Counted from the first letter of the stretch, positions 2,381-9,087 are shown. The stretch: 64,000 nt of DNA from Adineta vaga (GCA_021613535.1 CP075495.1:14136001-14200000), one strand, 5' to 3'. Made by a program: numbers and translations. The notes: generated from the letters alone by a model not told the origin.

Positions 2381-3561
2381 TTCTTTTTTTTCTGTTTCGT
2401 TCTCCTTTTTTTTACTTACACCAAGTTCAAATTGAGGTCATCAATGTAGTATACATGGAACTATCCCTGTTCCTTTTTTTTTCTTCGTCTTTACGTTCAC
2501 AATTCTATGATGGATGAACGAACAAAAAGAAAGAGAAGAAAAAAGGCGAGGAAGAAAATGGTCTGTATAGTAGCATTATTACTATTACTTTCACGAAGAG
2601 AAAATAGGAAAGTCTAATCGCTCACTAAAATCTTGATAGAATCATACTCTCTATTTCTCTTTGCTTCTTTCTGAGTTGTCATCTATAGTTTCTTTTTTTT
2701 CGCTCTCTTTCGAACACAAATCGATAACGTATCGAGAAAAGAAAAGGAAATAGCCAGAAGTGACATTATTCTCCTATGCAAATATTGATTGACGTAAGTT
2801 TTGTCTGTTTACTGAACAATACAATAACAAGTAAAACATATAGGCCATAATATCCAACAGACTTGCAGCCTAGAGTGATCTATGATCTGATGATTGCTTT
2901 ATTTGTCAGTGTAATAACAATATATGATGACTGACATGCATATTTACTATTTGATTCCCTATGGTGTAAAAAAAGAAAAGTATTCTTTCTCTCTCTCTCT
3001 CTCTGTTTTTATTGTCTTGTTAATCTTAGACGATTGATATTATGATTATTAGAGACGATCTGATTTTGGTATTTATCATATCGAATAAAAACATTTGTTT
3101 TGTTTTTTTGATGAATAAGACAGATGAGATTGTAAAACAGGTAAGACAATCAATAGACGGGCACGTTATATAATGCAACTATTTCATTTCTTTCTTTTTG
3201 CCATTTGTTATTTTATATTGCTACAAGTCAGAATCGAATGTCATTTACATTTATCTTATGTCTTTCTCGACGCATCTATTCATATAAACATATCGAAAAT
3301 AGCTATTCACTCGGTCGTCTTAATATGATATATAAATATATATATATATATATAAGATCGTTGTAGTTTTAGTCGTCGCTTCTATCACCTCGTCGTCTGT
3401 GACTATTTAACTTCTTTTTTCTTTTTATTTTGCGTTCTCTCTTTTTCGCTTCATTTCTTGTCTGACTGCGCTCTCAAAGAAAAATATAAAAGTCATCATT
3501 TACTTTTACTTTTCATTCTTTTTTAGACGTTTGAATTTTATTTATATTAAAAAAAACCAAG

Positions 3562-5218
3562 ATGAATCACTGTGTTCGATTAGTATTATTATTTACTCCA
3601 TCGTTAGCTGCTCTTGGTTTACTAGGAATAGCATTCGCTACGAACTGGTGGACAATTGCTTTAGAACGAGTAAATATTTCGTTGAAAATTTACATTGAAA
3701 TTTTCTAAATCAATCTTTATTTTAGAATATTCCTAAAGATAATTCGTTTAATTCTTCAAATGATGAACGAATTCAATCAATCTTAATTCGTGTTCCATAT
3801 TCACGCAGTCTATTTTCGGAATGTGTTGCCTATCGAAATGTAAAAGTACTCGTTTCCAATACATTTGACTTTCGACCAAGTTTTACTTCGGATGAATTAT
3901 TCAAATTAGAAAATGAAAATTGTACAACTGAACAAGTTCAATGTAAAGAAGGTGTTGCTATTGCACGTCCATTAACACGTTGTATCGATAAACAACGTAA
4001 ATGTAATCGTATCGTTGATTGTGAAGATAAAAGCGATGAAACTAATTGTTCTGATACAACTGGTATACATGATCAAGAATTTTTTCATTGTCCAACGAAT
4101 TATATGAAATGTCAAGATAAGAAATCATGTTATCGACCTAGCGAACAAACATGTGGTAAGAAGATAATACAATAAGAGGAAAAATAAATTGAATCATTTC
4201 TTATGCACGAGTTTGTTTTTAGATGGTGTTTCGAATTGTATTGATGATTCAGATGAAATGAATTGTAATGCAGAAAAATGTCAACAAAATAAACATGCTT
4301 ATTGTCCTCGAGATGGTAAATGTGCTCGGCGAGATCATTCAAAACGGTATAATTCAATTCGAATATGGTTATGATGAAATATTCATTTTCTTTTGAAGAT
4401 GTGATGGTATTGTTGATTGTGCTGATCATTCAGATGAAGATGACTGTCAACGATGTAATGGAGATTCATCAATGATTTCATGTGACTCAAAATGTAAGAA
4501 TAACGAAGAAGAAAAGATTCGGCAATAATTATATGGGGTATTTTTAGGTTTTCCTAGTGAATATATGTGCGATGGAATTGTTCATTGTTCAAATTTTCAA
4601 GATGAAATTAATTGTGATGCTTACCCAACAACATCAGAGCGACATAAGAAATTTTCATATAATGGTCAAACCTGTATGGAACAACGTTTTAATCCATTAC
4701 GTTTTCATCCGTTCACAATTGATAAATCGACATTAAAATCCTATAAACATCCAGAACAACGTATTGATTATTTAAATTTGATCTTTTATTCACGATTAAT
4801 CATTTTCTATGGTATTGTCGGTGGATTAATATTTCTTTTATTTGCCGTTCTATCATTATTTTTCTTTGGCTGTTGTCGCCGACATTGTGTTAGTGTACCA
4901 TTTTATTTTTATGGCCTATGGATGTTATTAGCATGGCTATTGATAATGATTGCATTGGGTACGTTTGTTTACATGTGGTTTTGGCAAAAACAAACAGTTT
5001 TAGATGAAGGAAAAAGTTTATTAAATGAAATTATGATTCATGAAAGAAATCCAACTTTACGACGTGTCGAATTTTTTGGTTTAAGCTTTTGGTTAGCATG
5101 TGGAGCGGCATTATCGACACTTATTGGTTTATTATTATCATATTGTGTTTGTTGTACACTTGGTTCATCTCGTGCAGATGATAAAGAATATGAAATCATG
5201 CATATGCATGCATATTAA
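3562..5218 (+). CDS. Claudin/PMP22-family four-TM protein with four LDL-receptor class A repeats in extracellular loop 1
   Basis: Five exons. TM1 LVLLFTPSLAALGLLGIAFATNWW; claudin-like RSLFSEC; four LDLa modules ending CNRIVDCEDKSDETNC, CDGVSNCIDDSDEMNC, CDGIVDCADHSDEDDC, CDGIVHCSNFQDEINC; TM2-TM4 with FGLSFWLACGAA (claudin GWSFWLA motif). Confidence 0.8.
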
Positions 5219-6644
5219 TAAGGAAAAAAAATAATATCTGTCTAGTTGGTAATGTTGTTCTTTTATCTGTTATGTAGAATTTGTCATTGCCTAATGAAGC
5301 TCAATCTCACCACGTATCTGTTTCTCTTCTTTTCTTTTCTTTTCTTTTTTAAATTCTAGTCAAATATGTTTGCGTGTGTGTGTGGTCTTTTATCCGTTTA
5401 AAATTATTGTATTCTATGTATAGATATATTATGCCGATTTGATTAATGAGTAGGGATTACACAAAAAAAATGAATTTTTACTGTCTTATTATTAAAAATA
5501 TATATAAAATAAATTTCGCTTCTTCGTAATAGAAATAATATTTTTATATTTGTGAAAAACTGAACGATAGTAAAGAAGAAATATCTTTGTTTACTTCTCG
5601 TGTTGATTAGACACTTTGAAATTACTTCAAAATAAGATCGTGTTCAAAAACAATTTTCACAAAGTTCACTATGTTCAGGGCGTTTTAGATATTGAAAAAA
5701 ATGATTTTGTTATTCTACTTCAAAGATCATAATATCAATATTTGAACAATGTCTTTCAAATCAAATATTCATCTTTTGATAGAACGAGAAAAAACTGACC
5801 TTTTCTAGTTCATTGCATTTCTCCTAAAAGTACATTTACATGAGTTTTCTTTCTTTCAGTACAAAATCCAATTGAAAAACTAATTCGTCTGTTGTTATTA
5901 TTCGAGCGAATTGAATGACATAATTATTATTTGCACTACCATATTTTTTCTGTCGAATAAATATTTGTTAAAAAAGAATAAGACTCATCTAATTCAATGT
6001 TAATGATGAGTTCTCAAAAGTACGTAAGCGAGACCAGATACTTGAGATAAGTACAAATGAACTTTTAATCAAACAAAATCTTACCTAGAAAGTAATTAAG
6101 TAAATACATTGAGTTGTATTTTGAACACTTGAATTTATATTGAAAAAAATTTCTCTTTAATAAATAGTTTACCGTTAGTAAATAGATTTTCAAATCAAAA
6201 TTAATTATCGTTAACGAATGCATATTGACCTCGGATATATTTTCAAAAGGAAGTTCATACAATTGAAGTCACCTGAGAATTTTTAACGAGCAAGTATCTA
6301 GATAATTTCTCTTTCATCAGTTAATTTTCAATAGTAGAGAAAAAAAGCCCTATTTTCTTCCATTTCTATCCTTAACGACTTCATTCGTCTAGACAGATTA
6401 GTAATCTAATATTCGATTCAAACTGAAGTATTTTTTCTGAAAAATAACATATATATATATTTGATTGATAAGATAAATATATTCCACACATATTCATTTG
6501 TCTCTCTGCGACATATAGAAAGAGGAGAAAAAAAAGAATCACAAAAATAAGAAAGTTTATACAAGAAAATTTCTTGTCCAATTCAATTTCAATGAAAGAC
6601 ACAAATGCCTGCATGATGAGAAAGTGTTTGTCTGTTTCTTTTTA

Positions 6645-9087
6645 TTATAGAATTGTACAGACTTTGGTCGAATGATGTTGAACATCGCTATTGGTTGCTC
6701 GATGTTGTTGAGGTTGTGGTCTATTTAAATTTCGTTTTGTTTTAACCGTTGTTCCTCCATATGAAACACTTATGGGTTTTCCAAAGGAATTCTTTCGTCC
6801 ACCGGGTTCAGCACTAACCGACATTGAACGACCCCATGATGTTGATAAATCTTCATTGACTGCTTTATCATATAAATCATCACGTTCAATTGGATTTGAT
6901 TGTTTTTGTAAACGATGTAAAATAATTCGATATGTTCCATTGATACTATCACGATTGGAAAGAACTTTATTATTGGAATTTTTAGTTGTTTTTTGTAATA
7001 GTTCACTTGTTATACCTAAATCTTCTAATTTTGAATGAGCTTCATTTTCAAATGATGATGTTCTTGGTAAACAATCATTACTATCATTTTTAGTTAAATC
7101 TTTATTTACAGATGTCCAATAATTCGTTAAATTTAATGGTAATGGTTCAAGTTCTTCGGGAAAATTTTGATTACTAAGCCATGGACATGAACGCATCTGT
7201 TCAATCGACCAGCGTTGAACAGCTTCAGGATGAAGAAGGCCACCTAAACATAATAGAAAAAAAGAATATAAAAATACTGTCATTTATGAAATTAATTCTT
7301 TAATATAACAAAGATGCAGATGTATTTTATTCTATTAATCATTTGTTGACAAACATTTTATCTAAGACAAAGAATAATCGAGGTAAATCTTCCTTCCGGT
7401 AGGTAAGCTATTTTTAGTAGTAATTATAAACATCATTTTATTGACAGATGACAATTCCGGCGAAAGAATAAGTTTATAAAAAATTCTATTTATATAGTAT
7501 ATCAATGTTTACCAATAAATATTTGATTTAATCGGTCTAATATAGATATGACTTTTTTCCTTTCTTTTGAACGATCGTCTTCAGAATTAAAAAACCTACT
7601 TGAGACGACGACTCTTCTACTAAATAAGATAATCGTTTTCCTTTATAGCTTTTTTAGAATTCTTACGAATTAGTTGTTGACATTCATCGGATACATGAGG
7701 AGGAATTGAATAATGTCCATCTATAATAGATTTTTTTAATTTTCCAACATTTTCCGCTCGAAATGGCATTAAACCGGTAACCATAAAATATAACAAAATA
7801 CCCATGGCCCAAAAATCGACATAGATTCCAATATAATTTTCATCACGAAATAATTCTGGCGCAGCATAAGGTGGACTACCACAGAATGTTGTTAATGTTT
7901 GATTTTTTTCTGAATATGTACTAAAACCGAAATCACCTAATTTGATCAAACGTTCTTTAGCAAAAAAGACATTTTCACTTTTAATATCACGATGAATAAT
8001 ACCTTGACTATGCTAAATATTCAATAATATATTCATCGTTTTTTCTCTTATGCTTATTTCAAAAGTCGTCTTACCATATGATCAATAGCTGCAGTCATTT
8101 GAGCAAAGATAGACTTTGCTTCATCCTCAGAAAATTTTCCAGCTTTAGATATTCGTGTATAAAGTTCACCACCTGGTGCATATTCTGTAACAATATAAAT
8201 TTCTGTTGGCGTTTCAATGACTTCATATAGACGAATAATATTTGGATGATGTAAACGTTCCATCGAAGTTATTTCACGTAAAAGTAAACGTTGAGTACGT
8301 TCATCAAGTTTAGTTTTATCAAGAATTTTTATTGCAACTTTTTCTATTGAAAGAAAAAACTTATGAATAGTAGTTTTTCTTTCAAAAGAATTGCTTTTGC
8401 TAACAAATAGAATCGATTTAAAATCAATACATATGACATACTGATAAGCATAACTCATATAAATCATGTGTTAAACAATTATGAACAAAAAAGAAGAAGA
8501 AAGATGCATTGAAACGAATAATGTATTATGATGAATGAACTCATTTGGATGAATATCTACTCGTTTGATAAAATTGTTCTCATGGCTATCAACACAATTA
8601 TTTCTTCATGAACAATCAAAAAAAAGTCAGATGTCTCTTTCATCGACAGTAAGGTCATATTAAGAATATAACGGAATTTACCTTTAGCAAGTAAATGCAC
8701 ACCTAATTTGACACGAGAAAAATTGCCTAAACCAATATCACCTCGAATGCGATAAAACCCAATTCGTCGACCAGCTTTTTCTTCAGCTTTAAATCGCATA
8801 TCATGTTGTGAATCGTACAGAAGTTTTTCATAAGCTGTTAAACGCTTTTTTTCATCTTTAGCAAATGCAACTGTAACAGCAGCTGCTGATGGCATACTAC
8901 TTGATGAAGAGAATTCATCATTCATAATAACATTAGTTCGACTAGATTTATGATTTTGAGCTGGAACAGACACCGAATTTACATGATGACGCGTTTGACT
9001 CAATGATGTTCGACGTGATGAATTATTTGTTTCAACAATTGAATTCGATCGCATAGGTGTTGTGGTTCTATTTTCTGCCGTGTTCAT
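6645..9087 (-). CDS. NIM1K: AMPK-related Ser/Thr kinase NIM1
   Basis: LTAYEKL..GRRIGFYRIRGDIGLGNFSRVKLG, KVAIKILDKTKLDERTQRLL.REI, HRDIKSEN, DFGFS, TFCGSPPYAAPELF across multiple exons. Confidence 0.9.

Follow-up and report, generated by a model that had tools for sequence, protein, structure and literature searches.

The 64,000-nucleotide stretch of the Adineta vaga genome analysed here (GCA_021613535.1 CP075495.1:14136001-14200000, henceforth the window) contains a five-exon gene whose predicted product combines a four-pass membrane core of the claudin type with four low-density-lipoprotein-receptor class A (LDLa) modules placed in its first extracellular loop (loop 1). The exons add up to 1428 nucleotides, i.e. 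475 codons plus a stop, and are separated by introns of 56, 67, 52 and 54 nucleotides, all four of which have GT..AG borders. All the motifs named in an initial annotation of this gene, which had been made from the sequence alone, are present, namely ATNWW at the end of the first transmembrane helix (TM1), RSLFSEC and GQTC on either side of the LDLa modules, FFGLSFWLA (from 5072) at the start of TM4, and the tail DKEYEIMHMHAY. The features of the locus are collected in Table 1.

Table 1. Features of the tetraspan/LDLa gene and its neighbour, in window positions. The last column gives the matching residues of the best ortholog, the Adineta ricciae protein P0175, with percent identity; the strands of exon 2 and the TM helices of exon 5 were placed from the AlphaFold2 model of P0175.
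Feature	Positions	Strand	Content	Match in P0175
Tetraspan/LDLa gene	3562-5218	+	five exons, 475 codons and stop TAA (5216-5218)	
Exon 1	3562-3669	+	start codon, short cytoplasmic N-terminus, TM1 (about 3580-3651), ATNWW (3637-3651)	1-36, 94%
Exon 2	3726-4155	+	N-terminal part of loop 1, beta-strands, RSLFSEC (3804-3824), LDLa module 1, first half of module 2 (from 4089)	37-179, 81%
Exon 3	4223-4346	+	second half of module 2 (to 4266), first half of module 3 (from 4279)	181-220, 92.5%
Exon 4	4399-4493	+	second half of module 3 (to 4447), first half of module 4 (from 4454)	222-252, 90%
Exon 5	4548-5218	+	first part: end of module 4 (to 4615), return strand with GQTC (4664-4675)	254-476, 77%
Exon 5, membrane part		+	TM2 (4796-4870), membrane-proximal GCCRRHC (4868-4888), TM3 (4901-4984), then loop 2	
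Exon 5, C-terminal part		+	TM4 (5072-5143, starting FFGLSFWLA), YCVCC (5141-5155), tail DKEYEIMHMHAY (5180-5215), stop	
Four-module LDLa insert	3921-4615	+	between the RSLFSEC and GQTC cysteines, interrupted by introns 2-4	
LDLa module 1	3921-4049	+	six cysteines, acidic cluster DKSDE	
LDLa module 2	4089-4266	+	six cysteines, acidic cluster DDSDE	
LDLa module 3	4279-4447	+	six cysteines, acidic cluster DHSDE	
LDLa module 4	4454-4615	+	six cysteines, acidic cluster NFQDE	
YEIM	5189-5200	+	YxxPhi-type tyrosine motif within the invariant K-E-Y-E-I of the cytoplasmic tail	
Ser/Thr protein-kinase gene	6645-9087	-	multi-exon, tail-to-tail with the tetraspan gene	

The transcript was examined by comparing contigs of public sequencing runs with the genomic sequence over positions 3400-5400. 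Three RNA-like runs (X1, X3 and X5, from two studies) contain intron-free contigs: the joint 3669>3726 is read directly in one RNA-like contig in three runs, the joints 4346>4399 and 4493>4548 both fall within another, and exon 2 (3726-4155) is covered by RNA contigs. The remaining junction, 4155|4223, is linked through overlapping contig ends, in that one contig reaches 4155 and then runs on for 17 letters that are those of 4223-4239, and 11 letters identical to 4144-4154 precede the contig that starts at exon 3. The contigs of a DNA-like run (X12), in contrast, pass unspliced through introns 1, 3 and 4 and show none of the joints. Since the joints are thus seen in intron-free RNA-like contigs and are lacking from the DNA-like run, the transcript is real, including the link of exon 1 to the LDLa exons, and the intact spliced gene proposed at the outset stands, with three junctions read directly and the fourth through overlapping contig ends.

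Within 4879-4998 two versions of the contig occur in each RNA-like run, with differences at four sites, two of which are silent (4909 T>C and 4937 C>T) and two of which replace a residue (4959 G>T, glycine to valine; 4968 T>C, valine to alanine). Such pairs of variants suggest expression from two alleles or strains. Across the runs there are 12 coding differences, of which seven are silent and none (0/12) affects a cysteine or the tail motif.

The exons are collinear with annotated proteins of 465-479 residues from Adineta ricciae, A. steineri and A. vaga itself, Rotaria socialis, R. sordida, two Silwood Rotaria and Didymodactylos carnosus, while the R. magnacalcarata ortholog is annotated at 406 residues; in the databases all bdelloid orthologs are called unnamed, uncharacterized or hypothetical. 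The A. ricciae protein P0175 (476 residues) matches best; the exons map onto it collinearly at 77-94% identity, and the single-residue gaps in this mapping coincide exactly with the three split codons. Because of this collinear mapping onto an annotated protein, a chance open reading frame is ruled out, and the gene is, on such comparative grounds, a real coding gene. In addition, cDNA-like products from other rotifers (P0018 and P0024) run uninterrupted from LDLa modules 2-4 into TM2-TM4.

The inserted modules conform to the LDLa type in length (about 40 residues), in having six cysteines and in having a C-terminal acidic cluster, and they are accordingly classed as LDLa modules by sequence, with putative Ca2+ binding. 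Of the two domain searches suggested by the initial annotation, that on the insert gave a clear result: the Pfam model Ldl_recept_a (PF00057) matches exon 2 alone with 25.9 bits (cut-off 24.1), aligns with half-modules in exon 4 (E-value 0.01) and in exon 5, and reaches 37.6 bits in three stretches on full-length P0175. Across an alignment of 14 bdelloid orthologs there is little or no variation in the LDLa cysteines and the acidic D/E residues. The top Foldseek matches of this part of the protein are megalin/LRP2, VLDLR and CD320 (E-values 2e-6 to 5e-3). The location of the modules in loop 1, between the RSLFSEC and GQTC cysteines, was likewise found as described, and both of these cysteines are conserved.

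The evidence for the fold of the membrane part comes from AlphaFold2 models of the ortholog P0175 and of a paralog type with a single LDLa module, P0064. The P0175 model, computed from a 30-sequence family alignment, has a predicted local distance difference test (pLDDT) score of 80.4 and a predicted template modelling (pTM) score of 0.76. In it the protein is predicted to form a four-helix membrane bundle (helices 3-26, 322-362, 369-403 and 432-458) with both termini on the cytoplasmic side, topped by a modelled outer beta-sheet to which loop 1 contributes four strands (DSSP: 31-33, 50-63, 67-80 and 288-291/296-300) and loop 2 contributes one (428-430). When the Foldseek candidates were realigned with VIA-align, P0175 superposed on TARP gamma-2 with a Z-score of 16.7 and a root-mean-square deviation (rmsd) of 3.1 A over 165/168 residues, and on GSG1L, MP20 and GARLH4/LHFPL4 with Z-scores of 16.6, 16.0 (165/166 residues) and 15.7 respectively. 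An exhaustive search of 48,161 PDB chains that was independent of Foldseek placed only members of the claudin superfamily at ranks 1-11 (Z 13.8-16.2, 132-179 residues aligned), namely TARP gamma-8, gamma-3 and gamma-7, MP20, LHFPL4, a designed claudin fold, claudin-15 (Z 14.9, 173/181 residues), claudin-19, claudin-4 and CaV gamma-1. Below rank 11 follow generic helix bundles with Z of 12.7 or less and about 110-120 residues aligned, and the other tetraspan folds score 11.3 (synaptophysin), 10.9 (sarcospan), 10.3 (connexin-50) and 9.8 (synaptogyrin). The P0064 model (pLDDT 78.8, pTM 0.77) brings the same eleven families to the top, with LHFPL4 as the best match; over both models these top ranks span Z 13.4-16.2. 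The outer sheet forms part of the superposition, because aligned lengths of 163-179 residues on targets of 162-181 residues require it; the membrane bundle and the sheet together thus superpose on claudin-superfamily structures over nearly their full length.

The residues conserved across the family agree with this fold. No substitution of W30, which corresponds to the second tryptophan of ATNWW where TM1 ends, occurs in any of the 30 family members, and G64, L65, C69 and C296 are conserved in at least 90% of them, forming a G-L-[FL]-x-E-C69 motif in which F or L takes the place of W. The two loop-1 cysteines of ordinary claudins form a disulfide and have 8-10 residues between them, whereas C69 and C296 are about 227 residues apart because the LDLa insert lies between them. 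W30, C69 and C296 are compatible with the fold, and the insert is predicted to lie in the hairpin between strands beta3 and beta4, between the two claudin loop cysteines.

At the level of sequence profiles the claudin relationship is much fainter. On single exons no claudin-type Pfam match is obtained, because the insert splits the domain, and a search of 30 full-length family members with PF00822 returned nothing at E-values up to 1. The same 30 proteins give a set of sub-threshold matches to SUR7, L_HMGIC_fpl, Claudin_2, Claudin_3 and Clc-like among other chance-level weak ones, that to L_HMGIC_fpl being confined to one family member. A scan of the genome with Claudin_2 (PF13903) picked out ten other loci and not the tetraspan/LDLa gene. 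A profile of the TM2-TM4 alignment compared with PDB sequences yielded LDLa half-module matches only, and a shape search of the ESM Atlas returned LDLa-receptor clusters and one fungal membrane-protein cluster, with no cluster of claudin-LDLa architecture. A protein-language-model feature search gave a cluster of Clarin-2/Claudin_2/PMP22 as the nearest (score 0.75), a result that serves as a lead only.

Taken together, these comparisons lead us to predict, with a probability that we put at 0.95 or higher, a 475-residue four-pass protein of the claudin/PMP22/TARP fold with four LDLa modules in the hairpin of its third and fourth strands. Several results weigh against this assignment and have to be set beside the structural ones. 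The Pfam matches over the 30 family members stay below threshold, with E-values of 0.27 for Claudin_2 (PF13903), 0.28 for Claudin_3 and 0.042 for L_HMGIC_fpl, while SUR7 reaches an E-value of 1.5e-5 at best and, in P0064, for which a bit score was given, 23.7 bits against a cut-off of 29.6. When the family was compared by hhalign with L015, a canonical claudin-like gene in the same genome, through both of its exons, the match was not significant (E-value about 0.2), although the expected motifs were aligned, namely the WW that closes TM1 and the FGxS with which TM4 begins. Finally, the predicted fold is that of an ortholog, with 77-94% identity per exon, and not of the protein encoded by the joined exons of the window. 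The claudin/PMP22 layout proposed in the initial annotation therefore holds as a fold (TARP gamma-2 Z 16.7, claudin-15 Z 14.9) and fails as a sequence-level membership, since the claudin models of Pfam remain below their gathering thresholds; its claudin kinship likewise holds for the superfamily, with the qualification that the nearest structures are TARP, GSG1L, MP20 and LHFPL4 and not the strand-forming claudins.

The claudin fold is a compact tetraspan whose small outer sheet acts in junction strands, in channel modulation and in toxin binding. Among its members the best structural matches to the rotifer protein are the TARPs (CACNG2-8) and GSG1L (Z 16.2-16.7, rmsd 3.1-3.6 A, 163-180 residues), which share with it the four-helix bundle and outer sheet, the tryptophan that closes TM1 and, in loop 1, a G-L-aromatic-x-x-C motif. 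The identity is only 14-17%, with no Pfam-level match; TARPs are not known to have an LDLa or other folded domain inserted in loop 1, and the rotifer tail of about 20 residues has KEYEIM..Y and lacks their S/T-x-V end. The classical claudins (claudin-15, -19, -4 and -3; Z 13.8-14.9 over 163-173 residues) have in common with the rotifer protein, beside the fold, two loop-1 cysteines on neighbouring strands, the cysteine clusters and an aromatic C-terminal residue, and differ from it in the close spacing of the loop cysteines and in having a -YV PDZ ligand. LHFPL4/GARLH4, MP20/LIM2 and CaV gamma-1 match with near-complete coverage (Z 13.4-16.0), and none of them is known to have an inserted extracellular domain.

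On the side of the insert, LRP2/megalin, VLDLR and CD320 also have LDLa modules in tandem, with six cysteines and the acidic cluster D-x-S-D-E. These are single-pass proteins, whereas the rotifer LDLa loop is predicted to be closed at both ends by strands of the tetraspan and the tail has a YxxPhi motif. Members of the LDLR family are of single-pass type I topology and have EGF and YWTD modules and NPxY tails; the rotifer protein has four TM helices, gave no match to PF00058 or EGF models and contains no NPxY, and it shares the LDLa modules only. Neto1/2, SOL-2 and LEV-10 resemble it in having a membrane-proximal LDLa module on a small membrane protein; they are single-pass, have CUB domains and lack a claudin fold, and the likeness is thus a functional analogy only.

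Beyond the fold, the short cytoplasmic tail is conserved as well. K212, E213, Y214, E215 and I216 are invariant in 27/27 aligned sequences, and the tyrosine of the motif, Y468, is invariant in 30/30 family members including monogonont and Seison relatives, in agreement with the YxxPhi motif recognised in the initial annotation. The tail comprises about 20 residues, and YEIM, which fits a YxxPhi sorting signal, is separated from the membrane by about a dozen of them. The C-terminus here is -H-A-Y, a terminal Y being found in every bdelloid sequence. Directly after TM2 (GCC) and TM4 (CxCC) are cysteine clusters that are conserved in the 14 bdelloid orthologs; claudins are palmitoylated at clusters in these positions, and by analogy those of the rotifer protein are probably palmitoylated as well.

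These features suggest, tentatively, a Ca2+-dependent cell-surface receptor that would be sorted or internalised via its tail motif, a function to which we assign a probability of somewhat more than one in three. The LDLa arm of such a receptor, sitting above the claudin sheet, would bind a ligand that is either soluble or part of the matrix, much as LDLR-family modules bind basic patches; the acidic-tyrosine motif of the tail (DKEYEIM, of the YxxPhi type) would recruit a sorting adaptor such as AP-2, and the receptor might then be internalised with its cargo. Three observations fit this proposal less well. NPxY, the usual motif of LDLR-type receptors, is absent from the protein. The conservation of the tail extends beyond YxxPhi (YEIMxM..Y), which suggests that its partner may be more specific than AP-2. 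Lastly, the nearest solved structures are auxiliary subunits of ion channels and not endocytic receptors.

The strongest competitor, which we nonetheless regard as unlikely, is a claudin of septate junctions or of cell adhesion, in which the tetraspan core would assemble in cis and in trans like the invertebrate junctional claudins and the LDLa arm would bind, in a Ca2+-dependent manner, a partner in the opposing membrane or the cleft. Rotifers, like other invertebrates, have septate and not tight junctions. The nearly full-length match to claudin-15, -19 and -4 speaks for such a role, as do the conserved cysteine clusters after TM2 and TM4, since claudins carry membrane-proximal clusters of this kind, and the final tyrosine of every bdelloid sequence, which is reminiscent of the -YV of claudins. 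This C-terminus, however, is not a standard PDZ ligand, and in relatives the tyrosine is not terminal, Seison ending in -SYT, group B in -YS and the one-LDLa type in -PYDE. Moreover, with about 230 residues inserted on the face of the sheet that mediates claudin contacts, the protein would probably pack less readily into strands, and TARP, MP20 and LHFPL4 score slightly above the junctional claudins.

Somewhat less probable still is an auxiliary subunit of a ligand-gated channel, whose TARP/GSG1L/LHFPL4-like core would dock on the membrane domain of the channel while the LDLa arm touches its extracellular domain, in effect a single-chain hybrid of TARP and Neto. The top structural neighbours, namely TARP gamma-2/3/5/7/8, GSG1L, GARLH4/LHFPL4 and CaV gamma-1, favour this possibility, but the Z-scores of TARPs and claudins differ by less than 2, because of which the fold does not single out the TARPs. 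TARP tails are long and end in a -TTPV-type PDZ ligand, whereas the rotifer tail of about 20 residues has neither the length nor the ligand. From the side of the insert, the LDLa module of Neto2 contacts the ligand-binding domain of the kainate receptor GluK2 (PMC12618232). A more specific form of the idea, to which we give slightly less weight again, is a single-chain fusion of two kinds of ionotropic-receptor auxiliary in which the LDLa arm would reach the ligand-binding layer as that of Neto does; if so, rotifers might have a lineage-specific way of tuning their synaptic or neuromuscular receptors, the reach being determined by whether one, two or four LDLa modules are present.

Two further alternatives concern the architecture itself. 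Membership in some other four-helix family (tetraspanin, MARVEL/synaptophysin, CD20/MS4A, connexin or sarcospan), with a claudin likeness in look only, appears very improbable: helix bundles do give middling Z-scores with many folds and the sequence-level claudin matches are not significant, but synaptophysin, sarcospan, connexin-50 and synaptogyrin fall far below the eleven claudin-superfamily chains, the MS4A chain of the Fc epsilon RI complex reaches only 10.0 against the paralog model, and the faint Pfam matches (Claudin_2, Claudin_3, L_HMGIC_fpl, SUR7 and Clc-like), like the language-model lead, agree on the claudin direction. A gene-model artefact, in which a secreted LDLa gene and a small membrane-protein gene were wrongly joined or exon 1 is foreign, is favoured only by the general fallibility of splice sites assigned by eye and is refuted by the single RNA-like contigs that bridge exons 1-2 and 3-4-5, with overlapping ends linking 2-3, as well as being at odds with the continuous cDNA-like products and with full-length annotated orthologs in seven named bdelloid species (eight labels with the Silwood Rotaria), so that it is practically negligible.

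The predicted claudin-fold protein with its LDLa insert belongs to a wider family, which was traced both in the A. vaga genome and in sequence collections. A search of the 100.8 Mb genome, in six contigs with the window on chromosome-scale contig C2:14136001-14200000, detected four family loci. The copy on contig C5 (L002) is 60% identical to the C2 gene, has the same five-exon layout and corresponds to the A. vaga protein P0172. The two others, L003:847-1941 (+) on contig C1 and L004:1480-2637 (-) on contig C4, are distant paralogs (32-37% identical) that have a single LDLa module in the same place of loop 1, a more claudin-like HYGLFGYC motif and tails ending in ...YEIVHMTPYDE and ...YVIVHTSPYDE respectively.

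An exhaustive profile search of 1.84 billion representatives yielded about 35 clusters that match the membrane part. Among them are P0059 of Seison nebaliae and a group whose members have two LDLa modules (P0053, P0055 and P0057). A further, diverse group, in which a single degenerate module is combined with a long TM2-TM3 loop, contains the Brachionus plicatilis protein BpHYR1_042120 (P0084). When the two-LDLa (P0055) and Brachionus-type (P0071) groups were sought in this genome, the only matches were the four loci already described, with low identity, and these groups are therefore assigned to other organisms. The number of LDLa modules in the family is thus one, two or four, always in the same place. 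All named members are from rotifers (Bdelloidea, Monogononta and Seisonidea), and no functional name has been given to any of them. The other matches of the search fit the LDLa half-module only, and the absence of the family outside rotifers accordingly holds only at the sensitivity of HMMER.

The databases annotate these proteins by PF00057 only. We found no paper or database name for a described family or a claudin-type protein with LDLa modules, in keeping with the earlier impression that the architecture is uncharacterised, nor did the literature yield a described member of the claudin fold with a folded domain inserted into its outer sheet. The family is a divergent branch of the claudin superfamily with a domain insertion, so far known only from rotifers, and adds a previously unannotated branch to that superfamily. 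The beta3-beta4 hairpin would appear to tolerate one to four independently folding LDLa modules while the flanking cysteines are kept, and such a natural domain insertion is relevant to the engineering of claudin and TARP scaffolds. For rotifer biology it provides a conserved, expressed and predicted surface protein with two experimental handles, namely the LDLa arm and the invariant tyrosine motif.

One relative of the Brachionus type, P0071 (519 residues), is encoded without introns at L005:2545-4104 (+) on a 4.7-kb metagenome scaffold, and combines a cysteine-rich degenerate LDLa module with a long acidic cytoplasmic TM2-TM3 loop; its SYEVLQMH is followed by a long basic tail.

The gene beside the tetraspan gene encodes a Ser/Thr protein kinase, with Pfam Pkinase matches of 75-81 bits on two exons. 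A clearly homologous kinase lies beside the C5 copy in the same arrangement (L002:308-1157), and because the homologous neighbour is in the same tail-to-tail orientation at both copies, the C2 and C5 regions are regarded, on this gene order, as an ohnologous block. Upstream of the tetraspan gene, RNA contigs begin at 3551-3557, which gives an observed 5' untranslated region of at least 5-11 nucleotides, and a short (AT)n microsatellite lies at 3336-3354, about 200 nucleotides upstream of the start codon.

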